This document shows, piece after piece, positions 1 to 6,343 of a DNA stretch of 6,343 bases. This stretch comes from Selaginella moellendorffii (Eukaryota; Plantae; Lycopodiophyta): the NCBI RefSeq assembly GCF_000143415.4, contig NW_003314726.1:1-6343 (forward strand), given 5' to 3'. Position 1 is the stretch's first letter; the number at the start of each line of letters is the position of its first letter. The position numbers and the translations under genes were made by a program. The notes beneath the pieces are model-generated. The model had not been told where the DNA came from. It saw only the letters and a program-made list of their open reading frames with translations, and made no database searches.

Positions 1-368
1 GTGTTGCCACTAGCAACCGTGATGCCGTGGAGAGTCTAAAACATGGAATTGTCCATGTTAGACTATATGGTAATTGGAAAGCTTGCAAAAAGGGAGACCT
101 TAGCAAGCTAAGGGACAGAGTTCCTTCAAGGTTCCCAAAGAGGATTCTAGGTAGCCTAGTACCTAGAAAGGCCAAGCGTAAATGGTTCAAGGAACGCACG
201 AAATCAGAGTGGCGCAGCAGAAGCGTGGTCTTGAAGCTTGCCATGAGGCAAGGCTATCAAGGTTAGGGAAGAAGTTCCCGAGTGTTCAAAGAGAGGGCTT
301 TGAACGAAAGTCGGTGATCAAGGGCTTTCACGCTTGTGCAGGAACCATGTTACAGTAGTCGGAGGACT
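1..368 (+). repeat. Direct repeat copy 1 (matches 5976-6343); part of the internal domain, not an LTR
   Basis: gtgttgccactagc...gtcggaggact occurs at both window ends at offset 5975. The ORF track gives the same 79-aa translation at 27 and 6002. No mismatch was seen by eye. Confidence 0.97.
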
Positions 369-626
369 TGCAAAAGCGAGATTGGCAAGTCAGGGGAACA
401 AATACCCTAGTTGAAGGTGATAACTTCAAAAAGGGTGGGCCATGGGGCCAAGCATGGAGGAGTCCATGCATGATCATAGGCTTGTCAAGTGAGAGGACTT
501 GGCAGTGGGGAGGAACTAGGTTCCTAAGCTGTGATCTATAGCGCGCTTTAAATATAGGTTGGTGCACCGGCGTGGGGAGTCACGCCAGGCATCTTGTGTG
601 ATGCCATCCGTAGATGCATATACGGA

Positions 627-681
627 GGTTGGGTTCGAGTCCCGACCCTCTAGTGCTTGGGTTCGAGTCCCAAATCACTAG
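627..681 (+). other. Two tandem tRNA T-arm-like hairpins, each containing a Pol III B-box match (GGTTCGAGTCC)
   Basis: ggttggg-TTCGAGT-cccgacc (627-647) and ctagtg-c-ttggg-TTCGAGT-cccaa-at-cactag (650-681). Both have the 7-nt TTCGANT loop. No full cloverleaf was found. Confidence 0.65.
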
Positions 682-972
682 GGCGTGGTGATGGTTTGGA
701 ATATGAGGACACTCATATTTCGGTGGTCATGGACTCTCAGTGGGGAGACTAGTTTGGGCACACCGCCAAGCGAGGGATGCCTCGGAGTCGTGATGCACGG
801 TTAGATTGCTTAGTGTGAAAGCTCGACATATCTAACTTAAACGCTTTGGTGCAAGTGGCACCAAGGTCGTGGTGAGTGAGATGGGGACACTTAATCTCAG
901 TTGCTATGAACCCTTGGCCGTAAGGGCTAGCTTGGGTGCACCGTCAAGTGTGGGGGATGCCCCCGGGGTTAT
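676..972 (+). repeat. Diverged direct duplication, period ~178-183 bp (about 676-790 vs 859-972)
   Basis: cactagggcgtggtga/caccaaggtcgtggtga (676/859); atgaggacact/atggggacact (703/881); ctagtttgggcacaccgccaag/ctagcttgggtgcaccgtcaag (749/927); gggatgcctcggagt/gggatgccccggggt. Confidence 0.75.
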
Positions 973-1058
973 AGTCAACAACTTGGAGGTCTAGAAGACC
1001 AAGTACCTCTTGGCAACTCTGTTAAGGTGCCAAGGTGAGATCACTACGTGATCTTATG

Positions 1059-1908
1059 NNNNNNNNNNNNNNNNNNNNNNNNNNNNNNNNNNNNNNNNNN
1101 NNNNNNNNNNNNNNNNNNNNNNNNNNNNNNNNNNNNNNNNNNNNNNNNNNNNNNNNNNNNNNNNNNNNNNNNNNNNNNNNNNNNNNNNNNNNNNNNNNNN
1201 NNNNNNNNNNNNNNNNNNNNNNNNNNNNNNNNNNNNNNNNNNNNNNNNNNNNNNNNNNNNNNNNNNNNNNNNNNNNNNNNNNNNNNNNNNNNNNNNNNNN
1301 NNNNNNNNNNNNNNNNNNNNNNNNNNNNNNNNNNNNNNNNNNNNNNNNNNNNNNNNNNNNNNNNNNNNNNNNNNNNNNNNNNNNNNNNNNNNNNNNNNNN
1401 NNNNNNNNNNNNNNNNNNNNNNNNNNNNNNNNNNNNNNNNNNNNNNNNNNNNNNNNNNNNNNNNNNNNNNNNNNNNNNNNNNNNNNNNNNNNNNNNNNNN
1501 NNNNNNNNNNNNNNNNNNNNNNNNNNNNNNNNNNNNNNNNNNNNNNNNNNNNNNNNNNNNNNNNNNNNNNNNNNNNNNNNNNNNNNNNNNNNNNNNNNNN
1601 NNNNNNNNNNNNNNNNNNNNNNNNNNNNNNNNNNNNNNNNNNNNNNNNNNNNNNNNNNNNNNNNNNNNNNNNNNNNNNNNNNNNNNNNNNNNNNNNNNNN
1701 NNNNNNNNNNNNNNNNNNNNNNNNNNNNNNNNNNNNNNNNNNNNNNNNNNNNNNNNNNNNNNNNNNNNNNNNNNNNNNNNNNNNNNNNNNNNNNNNNNNN
1801 NNNNNNNNNNNNNNNNNNNNNNNNNNNNNNNNNNNNNNNNNNNNNNNNNNNNNNNNNNNNNNNNNNNNNNNNNNNNNNNNNNNNNNNNNNNNNNNNNNNN
1901 NNNNNNNN
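1059..1908. other. Assembly/scaffold gap of 850 N
   Basis: Continuous run of N. The true length and content are unknown. Confidence 0.99.
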
Positions 1909-1995
1909 TTAGCGAGAACTAAACCAATAAAAGGAGAGAACCACTATATGTGGTCCAATCAGTCTCTAAGTTGGAGAGACTACCCTCCTTAGAGG

Positions 1996-2085
1996 ATATG
2001 CAAAAGGCATGGTGAGCCTTCAATGTCCAACCATTGACAAATATGGAGAAGGCATGGTGAGCCTTCAATGTCACACCATTGACAA
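1996..2085 (+). repeat. 45-bp tandem duplication (2 copies, 41/45 identical)
   Basis: atatgcaaaaggcatggtgagccttcaatgtccaaccattgacaa (1996-2040) vs atatggagaaggcatggtgagccttcaatgtcacaccattgacaa (2041-2085). Confidence 0.95.
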
Positions 2086-2152
2086 ATATTGGTTACGCGC
2101 CAAGGATGGAAATGGTAACACATGCGGGTGTTACTTTATAAAATGGTTCACC

Positions 2153-2172
2153 GTTCGATGAGGACATCGAAC
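2153..2172 (+). promoter_or_regulatory. Pre-PPT inverted repeat GTTCGATG-AGGA-CATCGAAC
   Basis: Perfect 8-bp stem with a 4-nt loop, 9 nt upstream of the PPT. It resembles the TTCGAGGACGAA / GACGAGGACGTC-type palindromes that precede the PPT in plant chromoviruses. Confidence 0.6.
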
Positions 2173-2181
2173 TTCGTCTAT

Positions 2182-2193
2182 GGGTGGTGGAGT
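2182..2193 (+). promoter_or_regulatory. Polypurine tract (plus-strand primer)
   Basis: GGGTGGTGGAGT lies immediately 5' of the TGT that starts the inferred LTR. It is G-rich but interrupted by T. Confidence 0.65.
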
Positions 2194-2410
2194 TGTGAGA
2201 CACAAAATCCCTAGGCCCCAAAGTGGAGCTGGAAGGGCGCCACATGGTAGTGGCCGAAGCGAGAGCCAAACGAGCGTAATACATTTGGACCAAAAGCTCC
2301 AACTTGAAAAGTCAAGAGCGAGAGTGGAACTCCCAACGAAGTGCTCGAGGAATGAGCACGAAGCGAGCAAAAGGCGAGGCTCCAAAAAGGGACCCAAAAG
2401 GACCAACACA

Positions 2411-2420
2411 TGACACGTGG
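2411..2420. promoter_or_regulatory. G-box/ABRE-like motif TGACACGTGG
   Basis: CACGTG core at 2414-2419 in ACACGTGG context, in the inferred U3, just before the satellite. A short motif like this could occur by chance. Confidence 0.3.
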
Positions 2421-2428
2421 GAGTGTCC

Positions 2429-2870
2429 AAGATGGACCCGAGTTGGAGTCCGAAGTGGAGTCCGAGATGGACCCGAGTTGGAGTCCGAAGTGGAGTCTGA
2501 GATGGACCCGAGTTGGAGTCCGAAGTGGAGTCCGAGATGGACCCGAGATGGAGTCCGAGTTGGAGTCCGAAGTGGAGTCCGAGATGGACCCGAGATGGAG
2601 TCCGAGATGGAGTCCGAAGTGGAGTCCGAGGTGGACCCGAGATGGATCCGAGTTGGAGTCCGAAGTGGAGTCCGAGATGGACCCGAGATGGAGTCCGAGA
2701 TGGAGTCCGAGGTGGACCCAAGATGGACCCGAAATGGAGTCCGAGATGGAGTCCGAGATGGACCCGAGATGGAGTCCGAGATGGAGTCCGAGATGGACCC
2801 GAGATGGACCCGAGATGGAGTCCGAGATGGAGCCCGAGATGGAGTCCGAGATGGAGTCCGAGATGGAGTC
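2429..2870 (+). repeat. Minisatellite of ~38 11/12-bp monomers (GAGATGGACCC, GAGTTGGAGTCC, GAAGTGGAGTCC, GAGATGGAGTCC) with 35- and 47-bp higher-order units
   Basis: Parsed manually: (11+12+12)x3 at 2429-2533, two 47-bp units at 2534-2627, then progressively more GAGATGGAGTCC/GAGATGGACCC monomers up to 2870. Confidence 0.95.
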
Positions 2871-3050
2871 GAAGTCGAGACCGAGACCGGGACCGAGACC
2901 GAGACCGAGATCGAGACCGAGACCGAGACCGAGATCGGGACCGAGACTGAGATCGGGACCGAGACCGAGACCGAGGCCGAGCCCGAGACCGAGCCCGAGC
3001 CCGAGTCCGAGTCCGAATCCGAGTCCGAGTCCGAGTCCGAGTCTGAGTCC
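2871..3050 (+). repeat. Compound hexanucleotide microsatellite, 30 units: (GAGACC)n grading through GAGCCC to (GAGTCC)n
   Basis: gaagtc at 2871, then 29 in-phase hexamers from 2877 to 3050, with variants gggacc, gagatc, gagact, gaggcc, gaatcc and gagtct. Confidence 0.97.
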
Positions 3051-3146
3051 GGAGCCTGAGAGGGTGAAAGCCCAAAGCGTTCGTCTCCCAGACCCTGGGG
3101 GGTTTGGTGAGCTCCAAAAGTATAGTAGGGGGAGGACTGCAATGGA

Positions 3147-3187
3147 GCCAGTTTGGCCAGGAAAGGCCAGTTTGGCTCAGGAAGGCC
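3147..3187 (+). repeat. 19-bp tandem duplication
   Basis: gccagtttggccaggaaag (3147-3165), gccagtttggctcaggaag (3166-3184), then gcc. Confidence 0.85.
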
Positions 3188-4058
3188 GGACCCAGTGTTG
3201 GGTGATGAGCTGCCCACTGGGAAGTCCAAGACTAGAGTGAACACGGACTGACAAGCGGGGTAGCTTGGTGAAGTGTTCAAGAGCCGGCTCTAGTTCCCCC
3301 GGGAGATCGACTGGCCGATGCTCCCAGTCCAAGTGTGGGTGGCACTACCTACTTGGATACCTGGTGTGGCTCAACGGAACCTCGCTCTAAGCCCATGGCT
3401 AGAGCACCTAAAGATGAAAGGTGGGGAGAGTACCCAGGAGGCTTGCGTAAGGCCACGGTGTTCTGAAATGGTGTCCCAAAGTCCCAGACTGTGGAAAGGA
3501 AGAGGGGTAGCCCTCCGGTGTGGTGACCAAGGACACAGTCACACAATGAGGAAGTCCTAGAGGATAGTGGGACTTAGTGGTCGGGCCGGTGGGCCTCGAT
3601 CTAGTGGCAGTGTTAGCGAACACAGCCAAGGACAGAAAGGGACTTGGTGGGGACCGGAACAGAGATATTGGGGAAGGCTATTCCCCATGTCTGTAGGCAT
3701 CCTAAGGATGTTAAGGAGTGGATCTGGGACAACCACTCATGGACGGATGACCCAGTCTTTGAGAGACGGGATTGGAATGTAGGTGGTGTTGGACCACCAG
3801 TGTGACCAAGGTAAATGGGCATGGCCTTAGCGTAACAGGCCGATATGTCGGAGATACCTTGGGGTGTCGATCATGGGATCGGACATGTGGAGCACTTGGA
3901 CCAAGTGCTAAGGTTGAGTGGCATGGATGCCATTCTCGGGGCTAGCAAGCCCCAAGTCCTGAGTTGGGCTTATGGAAGTTGTGAATGAGACTCCTCCAAG
4001 TGGTCGGAGGTGTGGTTAAGTGACTAAAGTAGAATGGAAAAATTAGTCGCTTACAATT

Positions 4059-4070
4059 TGGTATCGGAGT
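4059..4070 (+). promoter_or_regulatory. Primer-binding site, initiator tRNA-Met type
   Basis: TGGTATCGGAGT vs canonical plant TGGTATCAGAGC is a 10/12 match, and both differences allow G-U pairing with the tRNA. It lies 3 nt (ATT) after ...TTACA. Confidence 0.75.
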
Positions 4071-4849
4071 TGTTCCTTAGTCCGACTTTTATTAGTGCTC
4101 AAGTATATCACCATTGATATTGGTATCGGAAGGTCGTAGGAGTGGGCCTATCCTTGAGGAGTAGCACGTCGAGAGGACATGGCTCTCCACTCAAGTTCAT
4201 GCATGAACTTGGGCGCGATGTGGTGGATAGAAAAGGGGCCAGTAAGGGAACGACTTTGGGATCTTGGGAACAGTATATGGTTTTCCTCAGAGAGTTGAGG
4301 ATGTGACCCAGATGAGCGTTTGACTTAGCAAACTGGCTAATGTAGTTGTGGTAAACAACTACAGTTGGGATCACGGGAAAGATAAAGACTCCAAAGCAAT
4401 AAAGGAGTCACAAGATTATCCTCATATAGTTGAGGTTGGTACTCATGAATGTGAGACCAGAAGTAATGACCGTGGGAGGTCAAATACGGAAGAGGACTCA
4501 AGTCCTTGAAATGGTAGCCGGGGCTACCTTTAATAAATGCTGGAACAACCCAAGGAGTTGGGGGGTGTACTTAGAGATGAGTGGTATTCTCATCATATGG
4601 ACAAGTAGTTCTAAGGGGCAAAAGTTGCCCCAGAGAACAAAATCAAGTGTCAGAGTAACACTTGTGAAAATAGTCCTTTTGAGTAGGACAGGAATGCAAG
4701 AAGTGTATTCCAGTGAGGTAGGGCCTCACAAGTGAGACCTTACGGGTCTGTGGATTAACCAAGTCCAAAACTGCTGGATGACTCAAGTAGAGTCAAGGAA
4801 TGGTCCTAAAAGGACTAATGGAAGCATTTGGACTGAGGTGTGTTGTACC

Positions 4850-5791
4850 CCACGAAGGATGGGGGGGGGATCATAGAATCCAAAGATGAGAACAGAGGGT
4901 ATCTCATTGATGGCAAAATGTGCCATGCTAAAGTTATGGGAAAGGTGTTCCCAGAAGAAAACAACTTTGACACAAAGTTGTGTGTGACCTCTATGGTGCA
5001 GTGCTAACGGATGGTTAGCATGAGAAAGAGCAGTGTTGGTCTTGGCAAAGACTTAGACACAAAGGGGAAGTGTCATAGAGGTAGGCTCGAGGAGCCGATG
5101 GTGTGGAGACACCAAATGTGCCAAGGTGTGATACCTTGAAGCTATGTTCGTGGGTTCATGAGAACCCCTTGCTAAAGGAATCCCAATGGAAATGGGAATG
5201 GCATAGCCTAAGCTGCAAAGCATGCAATTGGAGTGTGGTGACCCAGATAATGATGGAGGTGCAGAAGCACCAAGCAATGAGTTGTAGGACTTGATAACTA
5301 TGAGGCAACTAAGCAAGAGGTGCAAAATAACTGGTTAAACAGGTAGAAGTTAGCTACCCAAGACTTCTTAATAGCATAGGGAAGTTGGATATACCCTTAC
5401 GGGGGAGAAGTTGCTGGTGTTGCGATATAGTAAGTCAATGTCATAAAAGGAAATACTCATTGTCAAGAAAGCCATCATTGGGACATACGAACACTCTAGA
5501 ACACCAGAAGGTGGTGTTTGATGTCGCGAGGGCAATGGATAAGGCCCAAGGGACTAAGTCCCTAGCGAATGATGGATAAAAAGTGCTATCCAAATGTCCA
5601 AGGCTGTGGAGACAGGAGAAGACTGTCTACCCGAGTTGGACAAAGCCAAAAAAATGGAATTTTGGCAAGGCTAGTGATGGGCATGTAAAGGCCCATAAGC
5701 AACAATGTAATCCCAATGTGTGGGATTATAAGGTGAGCATACCCGGATTGAGGAACCACTCCCTGGACTATTGGGTAGGTTCATCCCTAAA
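4850..5791 (+). pseudogene. Possible highly decayed Ty3/gypsy reverse-transcriptase remnant
   Basis: Short motifs in different frames but in the correct order: PRR..DHRI (4850-4880), DIV (5424-5432), EH-(+1 nt)-LEHQKVVFDVAR (5489-5531), GLLGRFIPK (5765-5791). There is no YxDD and the spacing is only approximate. Confidence 0.3.
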
Positions 5792-5975
5792 AATACTTGC
5801 TAAGGCATGATAGAAAGTGCAAAGCTATCCTCCTAGTCTAGAGGAGAATGACCGAAGGAAAGATGTGAAGCCAAAAGCAAGGAGTAAGGGGATAGAACCG
5901 AACTATAGGAATCGAAGGGCATAACCAAGGTTGGTTATGCCAACTGGGAGTGGAGAATCAAGTGGGGGCTCGAGG

Positions 5976-6343
5976 GTGTTGCCACTAGCAACCGTGATGC
6001 CGTGGAGAGTCTAAAACATGGAATTGTCCATGTTAGACTATATGGTAATTGGAAAGCTTGCAAAAAGGGAGACCTTAGCAAGCTAAGGGACAGAGTTCCT
6101 TCAAGGTTCCCAAAGAGGATTCTAGGTAGCCTAGTACCTAGAAAGGCCAAGCGTAAATGGTTCAAGGAACGCACGAAATCAGAGTGGCGCAGCAGAAGCG
6201 TGGTCTTGAAGCTTGCCATGAGGCAAGGCTATCAAGGTTAGGGAAGAAGTTCCCGAGTGTTCAAAGAGAGGGCTTTGAACGAAAGTCGGTGATCAAGGGC
6301 TTTCACGCTTGTGCAGGAACCATGTTACAGTAGTCGGAGGACT
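5976..6343 (+). repeat. Direct repeat copy 2 (matches 1-368), truncated by the window end
   Basis: Same sequence as 1-368 at offset 5975. Confidence 0.97.

Follow-up and report, generated by a model that had tools for sequence, protein, structure and literature searches.

What accounts for several kilobases of non-coding DNA that read as a chain of short hairpins sharing no sequence? The question is raised by a stretch of 6,343 bases from the lycophyte Selaginella moellendorffii (contig NW_003314726.1, positions 1 to 6,343 of the forward strand; this whole stretch is called the window). As judged from its sequence features, the window most likely holds a non-autonomous derivative of a long terminal repeat (LTR) retrotransposon, of the size of the large retrotransposon derivatives (LARDs) and of plant origin. 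A first-pass annotation had described much of this element as a kilobase-scale series of closely spaced mini-hairpins and had proposed that its RNA was selected to fold. The density of perfect hairpins is indeed well above that of structured-RNA controls and twice that of the MS2 phage RNA genome.

Hairpins were counted as perfect Watson-Crick stems of at least 5 bp with a loop of 3-8 nt (or, in a wider count, 2-12 nt), and dinucleotide shuffles served as the null. The counted sequence consists of 1-1058, 1909-2424 and 3052-5975 (4,498 nt). An assembly gap and an internal satellite were excluded, and 5976-6343 was left out because it repeats 1-368 base for base. Loops of 3-8 nt give 104 hairpins against 20.4 in shuffles, which is a 5.1-fold excess (z about 18) and a density of 23 per kb. 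With loops of 2-12 nt the count is 131 against 36.3 +/- 6.3 in 500 dinucleotide shuffles, and it becomes 63 against 8.9 for stems of at least 6 bp and 25 against 2.3 for stems of at least 7 bp. The same count gives a 2.5-fold excess in the MS2 RNA genome, 1.1-fold in Escherichia coli 16S rRNA, 1.3-fold in its 23S rRNA, and 1.3- to 1.4-fold in the coding DNA of rpoB and rpoC. No shuffle reached any of the values observed in the wider count. All 20 inverted repeats quoted in the first-pass annotation were found where it had placed them, with loops of 1-22 nt.

The hairpins are distributed over the following segments, and the longest stems are listed with them:

1 to 1058, plus strand: hairpin-chain segment left of the gap, with 26 perfect hairpins (stem of at least 5 bp, loop of 3-8 nt)
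1909 to 2424, plus strand: hairpin-chain segment between gap and satellite, with 14 perfect hairpins
3052 to 5975, plus strand: hairpin-chain segment right of the satellite, with 64 perfect hairpins (5.3-fold excess in 4056-5975)
5918 to 5941, plus strand: longest perfect hairpin, with a 10-bp stem and a 4-nt loop
145 to 168, 4341 to 4363 and 4961 to 4981, plus strand: perfect hairpins with 9-bp stems

The excess is 4.7- to 6.2-fold in 1-368 (8 hairpins, 1.7 expected), 369-1058 (18 hairpins, 2.9 expected) and 4056-5975, and weaker, at 3.0-fold, in 3052-4055. With the wider loop range, 1909-2424 contains 15 hairpins against 3.8. The median spacing of hairpin centres is 34.5 nt. Low complexity and local composition are ruled out as the cause of these counts by block shuffles that keep composition within 20-50 nt, in which the excess stays at 4.0- to 5.8-fold. 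Other symmetries of the same geometry behave differently, as mirror repeats stand at 0.7-fold and direct repeats at 1.3-fold of expectation. Only the reverse-complement symmetry is enriched, and the signal is thus specific to base-pairing symmetry. The hairpins are likewise not diverged copies of one unit, since a sensitive self-BLAST returned no match outside the satellite. Together with the hairpin counts, this search upholds the earlier statements that the stems share no sequence and that the repeat is one of structure.

The anatomy of the hairpins is narrowly defined. The excess is limited to spacers of 2-8 nt, it peaks at 4-7 nt, and it is absent at 0-1 nt and above about 13 nt. By stem length it amounts to +38, +24, +10, +7, +3 and +1 hairpins for stems of 5 to 10 bp, respectively. 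The values for 3- and 4-bp stems (+10 and +8) are not significant, and the onset at 5 bp is abrupt. This profile of spacers and stem lengths looks thermodynamic. Perfect helices are at most 10 bp long, and composite helices reach about 13 bp. Past the first mismatch, pairing is at the level of chance, with 10 of the 104 stems continuing for at least 2 pairs, and the stems are therefore bounded units. For the same reason they are not the remains of decayed long inverted repeats. AA dinucleotides flanking the stems were considered as a possible signal and rejected, as their frequency equals that of the unpaired composition.

Folding energies agree with the counts. In 120-nt sliding windows, the minimum free energy (MFE) lies below that of shuffles with a mean z of about -2 to -2.6. 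In 1-1058 the mean MFE z is -2.6 on the plus strand and -2.2 on the minus strand. The 600 nt at 4300-4899 fold with a z of -8.35 as plus-strand RNA, -8.13 as minus-strand RNA and -9.66 as plus-strand single-stranded DNA (ssDNA). Unconstrained folds of 500 nt are dominated by local pairing, since 67% of pairs span 30 nt or less against 46% in shuffles, and they contain 29 hairpin loops per kb against 20. In the local fold, 54% of the bases lie in stems, 28% in loops and 18% in linkers. The chain had been said to run across much of the element, and an excess is indeed present in every counted segment. However, it is interrupted at two places:

5212 to 5450, plus strand: hairpin-poor interruption, z about 0 on both strands
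about 5752 to 5900, plus strand: second hairpin-poor interruption, z about 0 on both strands

These hairpin-poor stretches might be a differently constrained domain or a later insertion.

The composition of the stem arms bears on how the hairpins came about. The purine asymmetry of the arms is 0.182, compared with 0.170 +/- 0.012 for balanced arms and 0.236 +/- 0.015 for arms derived from the background. Arms copied from purine-rich neighbours should be skewed, so the observed asymmetry, which fits balanced arms, disfavours copying. The observed/expected ratio of CpG is 0.15 in perfect stem arms and 0.57 elsewhere, TG and CA are both at 1.45 in the arms, and the count of interrupted stems revealed no broken TG:TG or CA:CA steps. 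Recent copying of background sequence predicts a stem CpG ratio of about 0.57, and neutral decay of older stems predicts broken TG:TG and CA:CA steps; neither matches what is seen. A third test concerns interrupted stems. Among stems of at least 8 pairs, 17 contain an internal G:T against 8.0 +/- 2.8 expected, whereas 6 contain an internal A:C against 6.8. This excess of G:T- but not A:C-interrupted stems points to pairing on the plus strand, on which G:T is read as G.U. CpG decay was rejected as the source of the G:T wobbles, as only 18 of 68 lie in a TpG context. Moreover, the two copies of a 45-nt tandem duplication differ at 4 positions, and 0 of these differences break a pair (chance about 0.06). 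As a separate observation, all four self-complementary dinucleotides are rarer in stem arms than in the rest of the sequence (observed/expected for TA 0.59 against 0.85, GC 0.73 against 0.89, AT 0.80 against 0.88, besides CpG), and only the CpG share is readily explained.

The reading that we favour, at a probability of roughly 0.45, is that pairing is maintained on a single strand, probably the plus-strand RNA, in a non-coding LTR-type element. Maintenance is suggested because the stems show a stability threshold, the arms appear as if matched by point mutation and not copied from the background, and the hypermutable CpG step is avoided. The plus-strand transcript, which would be the genomic RNA, is predicted to fold into about 25-30 independent local hairpins per kb, with stems of 5-10 bp, loops of 4-7 nt and purine-rich linkers between the hairpins. 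Pairing as such, and not a particular sequence, would be what is kept. The hairpins may then act as a multivalent, sequence-independent scaffold, which would serve the survival of a non-coding RNA and its uptake by the Gag or nucleocapsid protein of a helper element. Helices of this length could still be melted by reverse transcriptase and would be too short for dicing. The roles suggested in the first-pass annotation (competition for Gag, compaction, keeping below the length needed by Dicer) are speculative, and the helix lengths given above are the one observation that bears on them. What the data show is the hairpin architecture with its statistics and an absence of coding capacity; retroelement identity, strand, selection and function are inferred. 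That the whole RNA has been selected as about 100 sequence-unrelated mini-hairpins, serving as a scaffold for Gag/nucleocapsid capture, for silencing evasion, or for both, is a more doubtful proposal. If it were true, non-autonomous elements would have a means of competing that has not been described before.

The element in which these hairpins lie has the following layout:

1 to 368, plus strand: first copy of the terminal direct repeat, either a candidate LTR by itself or the beginning of a longer one, with TG at 2-3
5976 to 6343, plus strand: terminal direct repeat, copy 2, extending to the last base of the window
1059 to 1908, no strand: assembly gap of 850 N
2425 to 3051, plus strand: internal satellite of 12-, 35- and 6-nt units
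1996 to 2085, plus strand: 45-nt tandem duplication, with the same two hairpins in each copy
203 to 229, plus strand: stretch within the terminal repeat that is similar to the 5' half of initiator tRNA-Met, present again at 6178-6204
4059 to 4070, plus strand: primer-binding site (PBS)-like site, a 10/12 match to the plant-type initiator-tRNA PBS, located after ...ACA plus 3 nt
4122 to 4132, plus strand: partial second PBS-like copy, resembling the 4059-4070 site
5945 to 5975, plus strand: purine-rich stretch resembling a polypurine tract (PPT), directly upstream of repeat copy 2, in a plus strand that is purine-rich as a whole

The two terminal repeats are identical at 368 of 368 positions, and copy 2 touches the end of the window. 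The non-redundant unit is therefore taken as 5,975 bp, the estimated gap included; a tandem or circular unit of 5,975 bp, if collapsed, would give the same picture as terminal repeats. The two sides of the gap were counted separately, and no hairpin or fold crosses 1059-1908. The plus strand has more G than C throughout (GC skew about +0.13 to +0.30), the sign of this skew is the same on both gap sides, and both sides carry the hairpin excess, which is consistent with one element in one orientation across the gap.

The satellite differs from the remainder of the element in its folding. Its unit is a quasi-hairpin that folds mainly on the plus strand via G.U pairs, and its mean MFE z is -4.95 on the plus strand and -1.62 on the minus strand. 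Since it is much better folded on the plus strand, it depends on G.U pairs, unlike the rest of the element. Along 2425-3051 the units are ordered from the 12/35-nt GTCCGAGATGGA type to CGAGAC hexamers and then to GAGTCC hexamers. Besides the satellite, tandem copies of 45, 28 and 19 nt are present. The 28-nt tandem duplication (629-684, plus strand) contains two exact matches to the B-box/T-arm consensus of tRNA, GGTTCGANTCC, where 0.01 would be expected. These B-box-like matches follow the tRNA-like A-box segment at a distance of about 400 nt, more than a normal type 2 promoter of RNA polymerase III (pol III) would allow.

Within the tRNA-like segment, the 23-mer at 205-227 (again at 6180-6202) has one mismatch to the 5' part of initiator tRNA-Met, with a chance expectation of 0.00. 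The bases flanking the 23-mer are presumably of plant type too, as is the PBS-like motif. Given these motifs and a depletion of CHG in addition to CpG, the window is not taken for human sequence. The reference sequence used for the 23-mer is printed as 5'tiRNA-iMet-CAT (PMC8001983). The segment is not a PBS, because it lies in sense orientation and a PBS would be antisense to the 3' end of the tRNA. Candidate origins are a captured tRNA piece or the remnant of a pol III A-box. A search of the window for tRNA genes found none.

The limits of the LTRs can be read in two ways, and both are kept here as alternatives. In one, the LTRs are 368 bp long and enclose a non-coding interior of 5.6 kb; no PBS-like sequence lies directly 3' of position 368, the expected place. 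In the other, the LTR is about 4 kb long (2-4055, TGT...ACA), the interior is 1.9 kb, and the 3' LTR is truncated where the contig ends. The 368-bp repeat ends in ...GGACT, not in CA, and a CA end (...TTACA) is found at 4051-4055, shortly ahead of the PBS-like site. Two occurrences of the PBS-like motif TTGGTATCGGA, at 4054-4070 and 4117-4133, lie 63 nt apart and may stem from a local duplication around the primer-binding site or from chance. Under either reading, both the size of the element and its absence of coding capacity are those expected of a LARD, for which the literature sets a size above 4 kb. The element is not a Cassandra-type terminal-repeat retrotransposon in miniature (TRIM) or a retrozyme, because neither a 5S rRNA nor a hammerhead is present. 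Relaxing the E-value brought up no 5S rRNA match, and a hammerhead ribozyme, which retrozymes carry in LTRs of about 350 bp, was found neither at the gathering threshold nor with E-values as high as 5. The unit measures about 6 kb compared with less than 1 kb for such a TRIM.

The window is non-coding. In a Pfam scan of 10 open reading frames (ORFs), no family reaches its curated cut-off and three weak matches fall far below it, which rules out coding remnants. In each of the six frames about 3-7% of the codons are stops, and the long ORFs of 250-330 amino acids read through the satellite and are repeat artefacts. In Rfam nothing reaches gathering scores, and only chance-level matches appear at relaxed thresholds; MIR2933 on the satellite and SCARNA18 just downstream of it were rejected as weak matches far below threshold. 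CpG is depleted (observed/expected 0.38-0.69), CHG is depleted as well, and TG/CA is in excess. This pattern is the signature of a methylated, plant-like genome. The CpG ratio is 0.58 in 1-1058, 0.69 in 1909-2424 and 0.38 in 3052-5975, and CHG is lowest at 1909-2424 (0.19). Such an uneven history of methylation decay could reflect the difference between U3/promoter and body regions.

Several findings weigh against maintained pairing on the plus-strand RNA. Both strands are equally foldable, and likewise with ssDNA parameters, so neither the strand nor the type of molecule is singled out by folding energy. No shared loop motif was found when one was sought, the commonest tetraloop being GGAG in 3 of 23, and the loops have the same composition as the linkers. 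The loops and linkers had been described as A/G-rich, and they do contain 68-72% purine; however, shuffles give an equal unpaired composition (A 0.42 observed and 0.43 shuffled, C 0.07 and 0.09), so purine-rich loops are no independent evidence and were rejected as a sign of RNA design. The stems are almost wholly Watson-Crick, with a G.U fraction of 0.11 compared with 0.15 in shuffles, and stem ends show no enrichment of G:T. The stability of 5-6-bp stems is no more than marginal. The signal of G:T over A:C is modest, with a z of 3.2 in one of six tests. Moreover, homogenisation of the arms by template switching could mimic both the stem-CpG result and the intact pairs of the 45-nt duplication. 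The earlier claim that the RNA was selected to fold is only partly supported: it gains from the balanced arms, the avoidance of CpG in stems and the G:T excess, and loses from the equal folding of both strands and the missing loop motif.

The identity of the element and its isolation add to these points. The description as a non-coding LARD stands as far as non-coding, repeat-like and LARD-compatible features are concerned. Less firm are the LTR limits, which are ambiguous (368 bp or about 4 kb) in a window without flanks for a target-site duplication, and the PBS-like match, which taken alone is at chance level (1 found against 0.47 expected per window). No related copies were found in protein, viral, metagenome, prokaryote-genome, plasmid or phage collections. 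Homologue searches with three ORF translations (4430-4732, plus strand; the satellite ORF at 2410-3237, plus strand; 5938-6219, minus strand) came back blank, and an exact look-up of the satellite ORF gave no match. Exact 23- to 25-mers taken at the start of the repeat, in the PBS region and from the satellite dimer were absent from viral, metagenome and prokaryote-genome contigs. A blastn search against plasmids and phages also returned no match, and six k-mers of the window did not occur in the literature text searched.

The same findings have to be weighed under other explanations, of which a mutational origin is the most serious competitor, though less probable than maintained pairing. Short-range template switching may make, perfect or extend inverted repeats in unconstrained sequence, by snap-back or quasi-palindrome correction by reverse transcriptase or a replicative polymerase, and would leave hairpins without function. 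Published work documents that RNA hairpins can be generated and preserved by template switching, which can also lengthen the arms of inverted repeats (10.1101/2021.04.15.439925, PMC5453318, PMC13100816). The hairpins described by Löytynoja and colleagues are, like those of the window, perfect short inverted repeats with small spacers and mutually unrelated sequences. Such a process would account for Watson-Crick stems with abrupt ends, for equal stability on both strands, for the lack of a loop motif and for G.U use below that of shuffles. The element also shows slippage and duplication in its satellite and its 45-, 28- and 19-nt tandem copies, and arm homogenisation could explain why broken CpG steps are absent. 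In contrast, the arm composition and the CpG content misfit simple copying of neighbours: the arms are compositionally balanced, 3.6 standard deviations from copies of the purine-rich background, and their CpG ratio is far from the value of about 0.57 that copied background should have. Nor do the sharp onset at 5 bp, without an excess of shorter copies, and the excess of stems interrupted by G:T but not by A:C suit this origin. About 85 independent events in 4.5 kb would be a rate far above any genomic template switching known to us, and the density is far beyond reported genomic rates.

A feature of double-stranded DNA is very unlikely by comparison. Short dyads would here favour non-B DNA such as cruciforms, in a repeat that is associated with centromeres or has some other structural role. 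The symmetry is equal on both strands and a satellite array lies inside the element. Moreover, centromeric repeats have an excess of dyad symmetries below 10 bp (Kasinathan and Henikoff 2018, PMC5889037), and the present stems are also below 10 bp and lie in repetitive DNA that includes a satellite. In contrast to the centromeric dyads, the window has a spacer optimum of 4-7 nt, a strand-specific skew and units without sequence repetition. The optimum of 4-7 nt suits single-strand hairpins, and 0-1-nt spacers are not enriched. The constant purine skew and the G:T over A:C asymmetry likewise point to a strand-specific, single-stranded life. Stems of 5-6 bp are, in addition, poor candidates for cruciform extrusion. 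Least probable of all, and highly so, is an artefact, in which a mis-assembled or collapsed repeat contig would owe its hairpins to the way it was produced. The gap of 850 N, the window end lying exactly on the 368-bp self-overlap and the absence of the sequence from all searched collections could be taken in that sense. However, the CpG and CHG depletion with TG/CA excess, the tRNA-derived segment and the organised satellite form a coherent biology, and the hairpin excess is found on both gap sides. No artefact of sequencing or assembly is known to us that would produce some 100 unrelated stems of 5-10 bp with loops of 4-7 nt.

Comparison with known systems places maintained pairing in an LTR-type element beside several structured RNAs without equating it with any. 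Like LARDs such as barley Sukkula, the element is kilobase-scale and non-coding, with terminal direct repeats, candidate PBS-like and PPT-like sites and an internal tandem array. Such LARDs, and TRIMs too, have been described as specifying RNA secondary structures that are conserved (PMC7215508). In contrast, the published accounts consulted give conserved folds and not about 100 unrelated perfect mini-hairpins at 23 per kb, and the literature searched yielded no account of a whole element laid out as a chain of unrelated perfect mini-hairpins this dense. The element shares with Cassandra TRIMs and retrozymes an LTR-sized repeat (368 bp) in which part of a cellular small RNA is embedded, here the 5' half of an initiator tRNA. 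It is far larger than these, and its structure is spread over the whole element and not confined to one LTR module. Single-stranded RNA viruses such as phage MS2 carry dispersed stem-loops that act as packaging signals. The window resembles MS2 in having many local stem-loops along a multi-kilobase RNA, and MS2 also has an excess of perfect hairpins. Unlike MS2, it has twice the density, it is non-coding, and it lacks a common loop motif for a coat protein to read.

Non-autonomous LTR elements make up large parts of plant genomes, and the RNA traits that suit them to helper proteins are largely unknown beyond the LTR, the PBS and the PPT. Should the hairpins turn out to be a by-product of mutation, the element would preserve a history of short template switching, perhaps by reverse transcriptase, with unusual clarity. 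An element whose readable 4.5 kb of non-coding sequence is built of short hairpins would be an experiment of nature in constraint on structure alone. It would open to direct test whether RNA folding in transposons is under selection for packaging, stability or evasion of silencing, and how pairing persists in a methylated, CpG-decaying genome.

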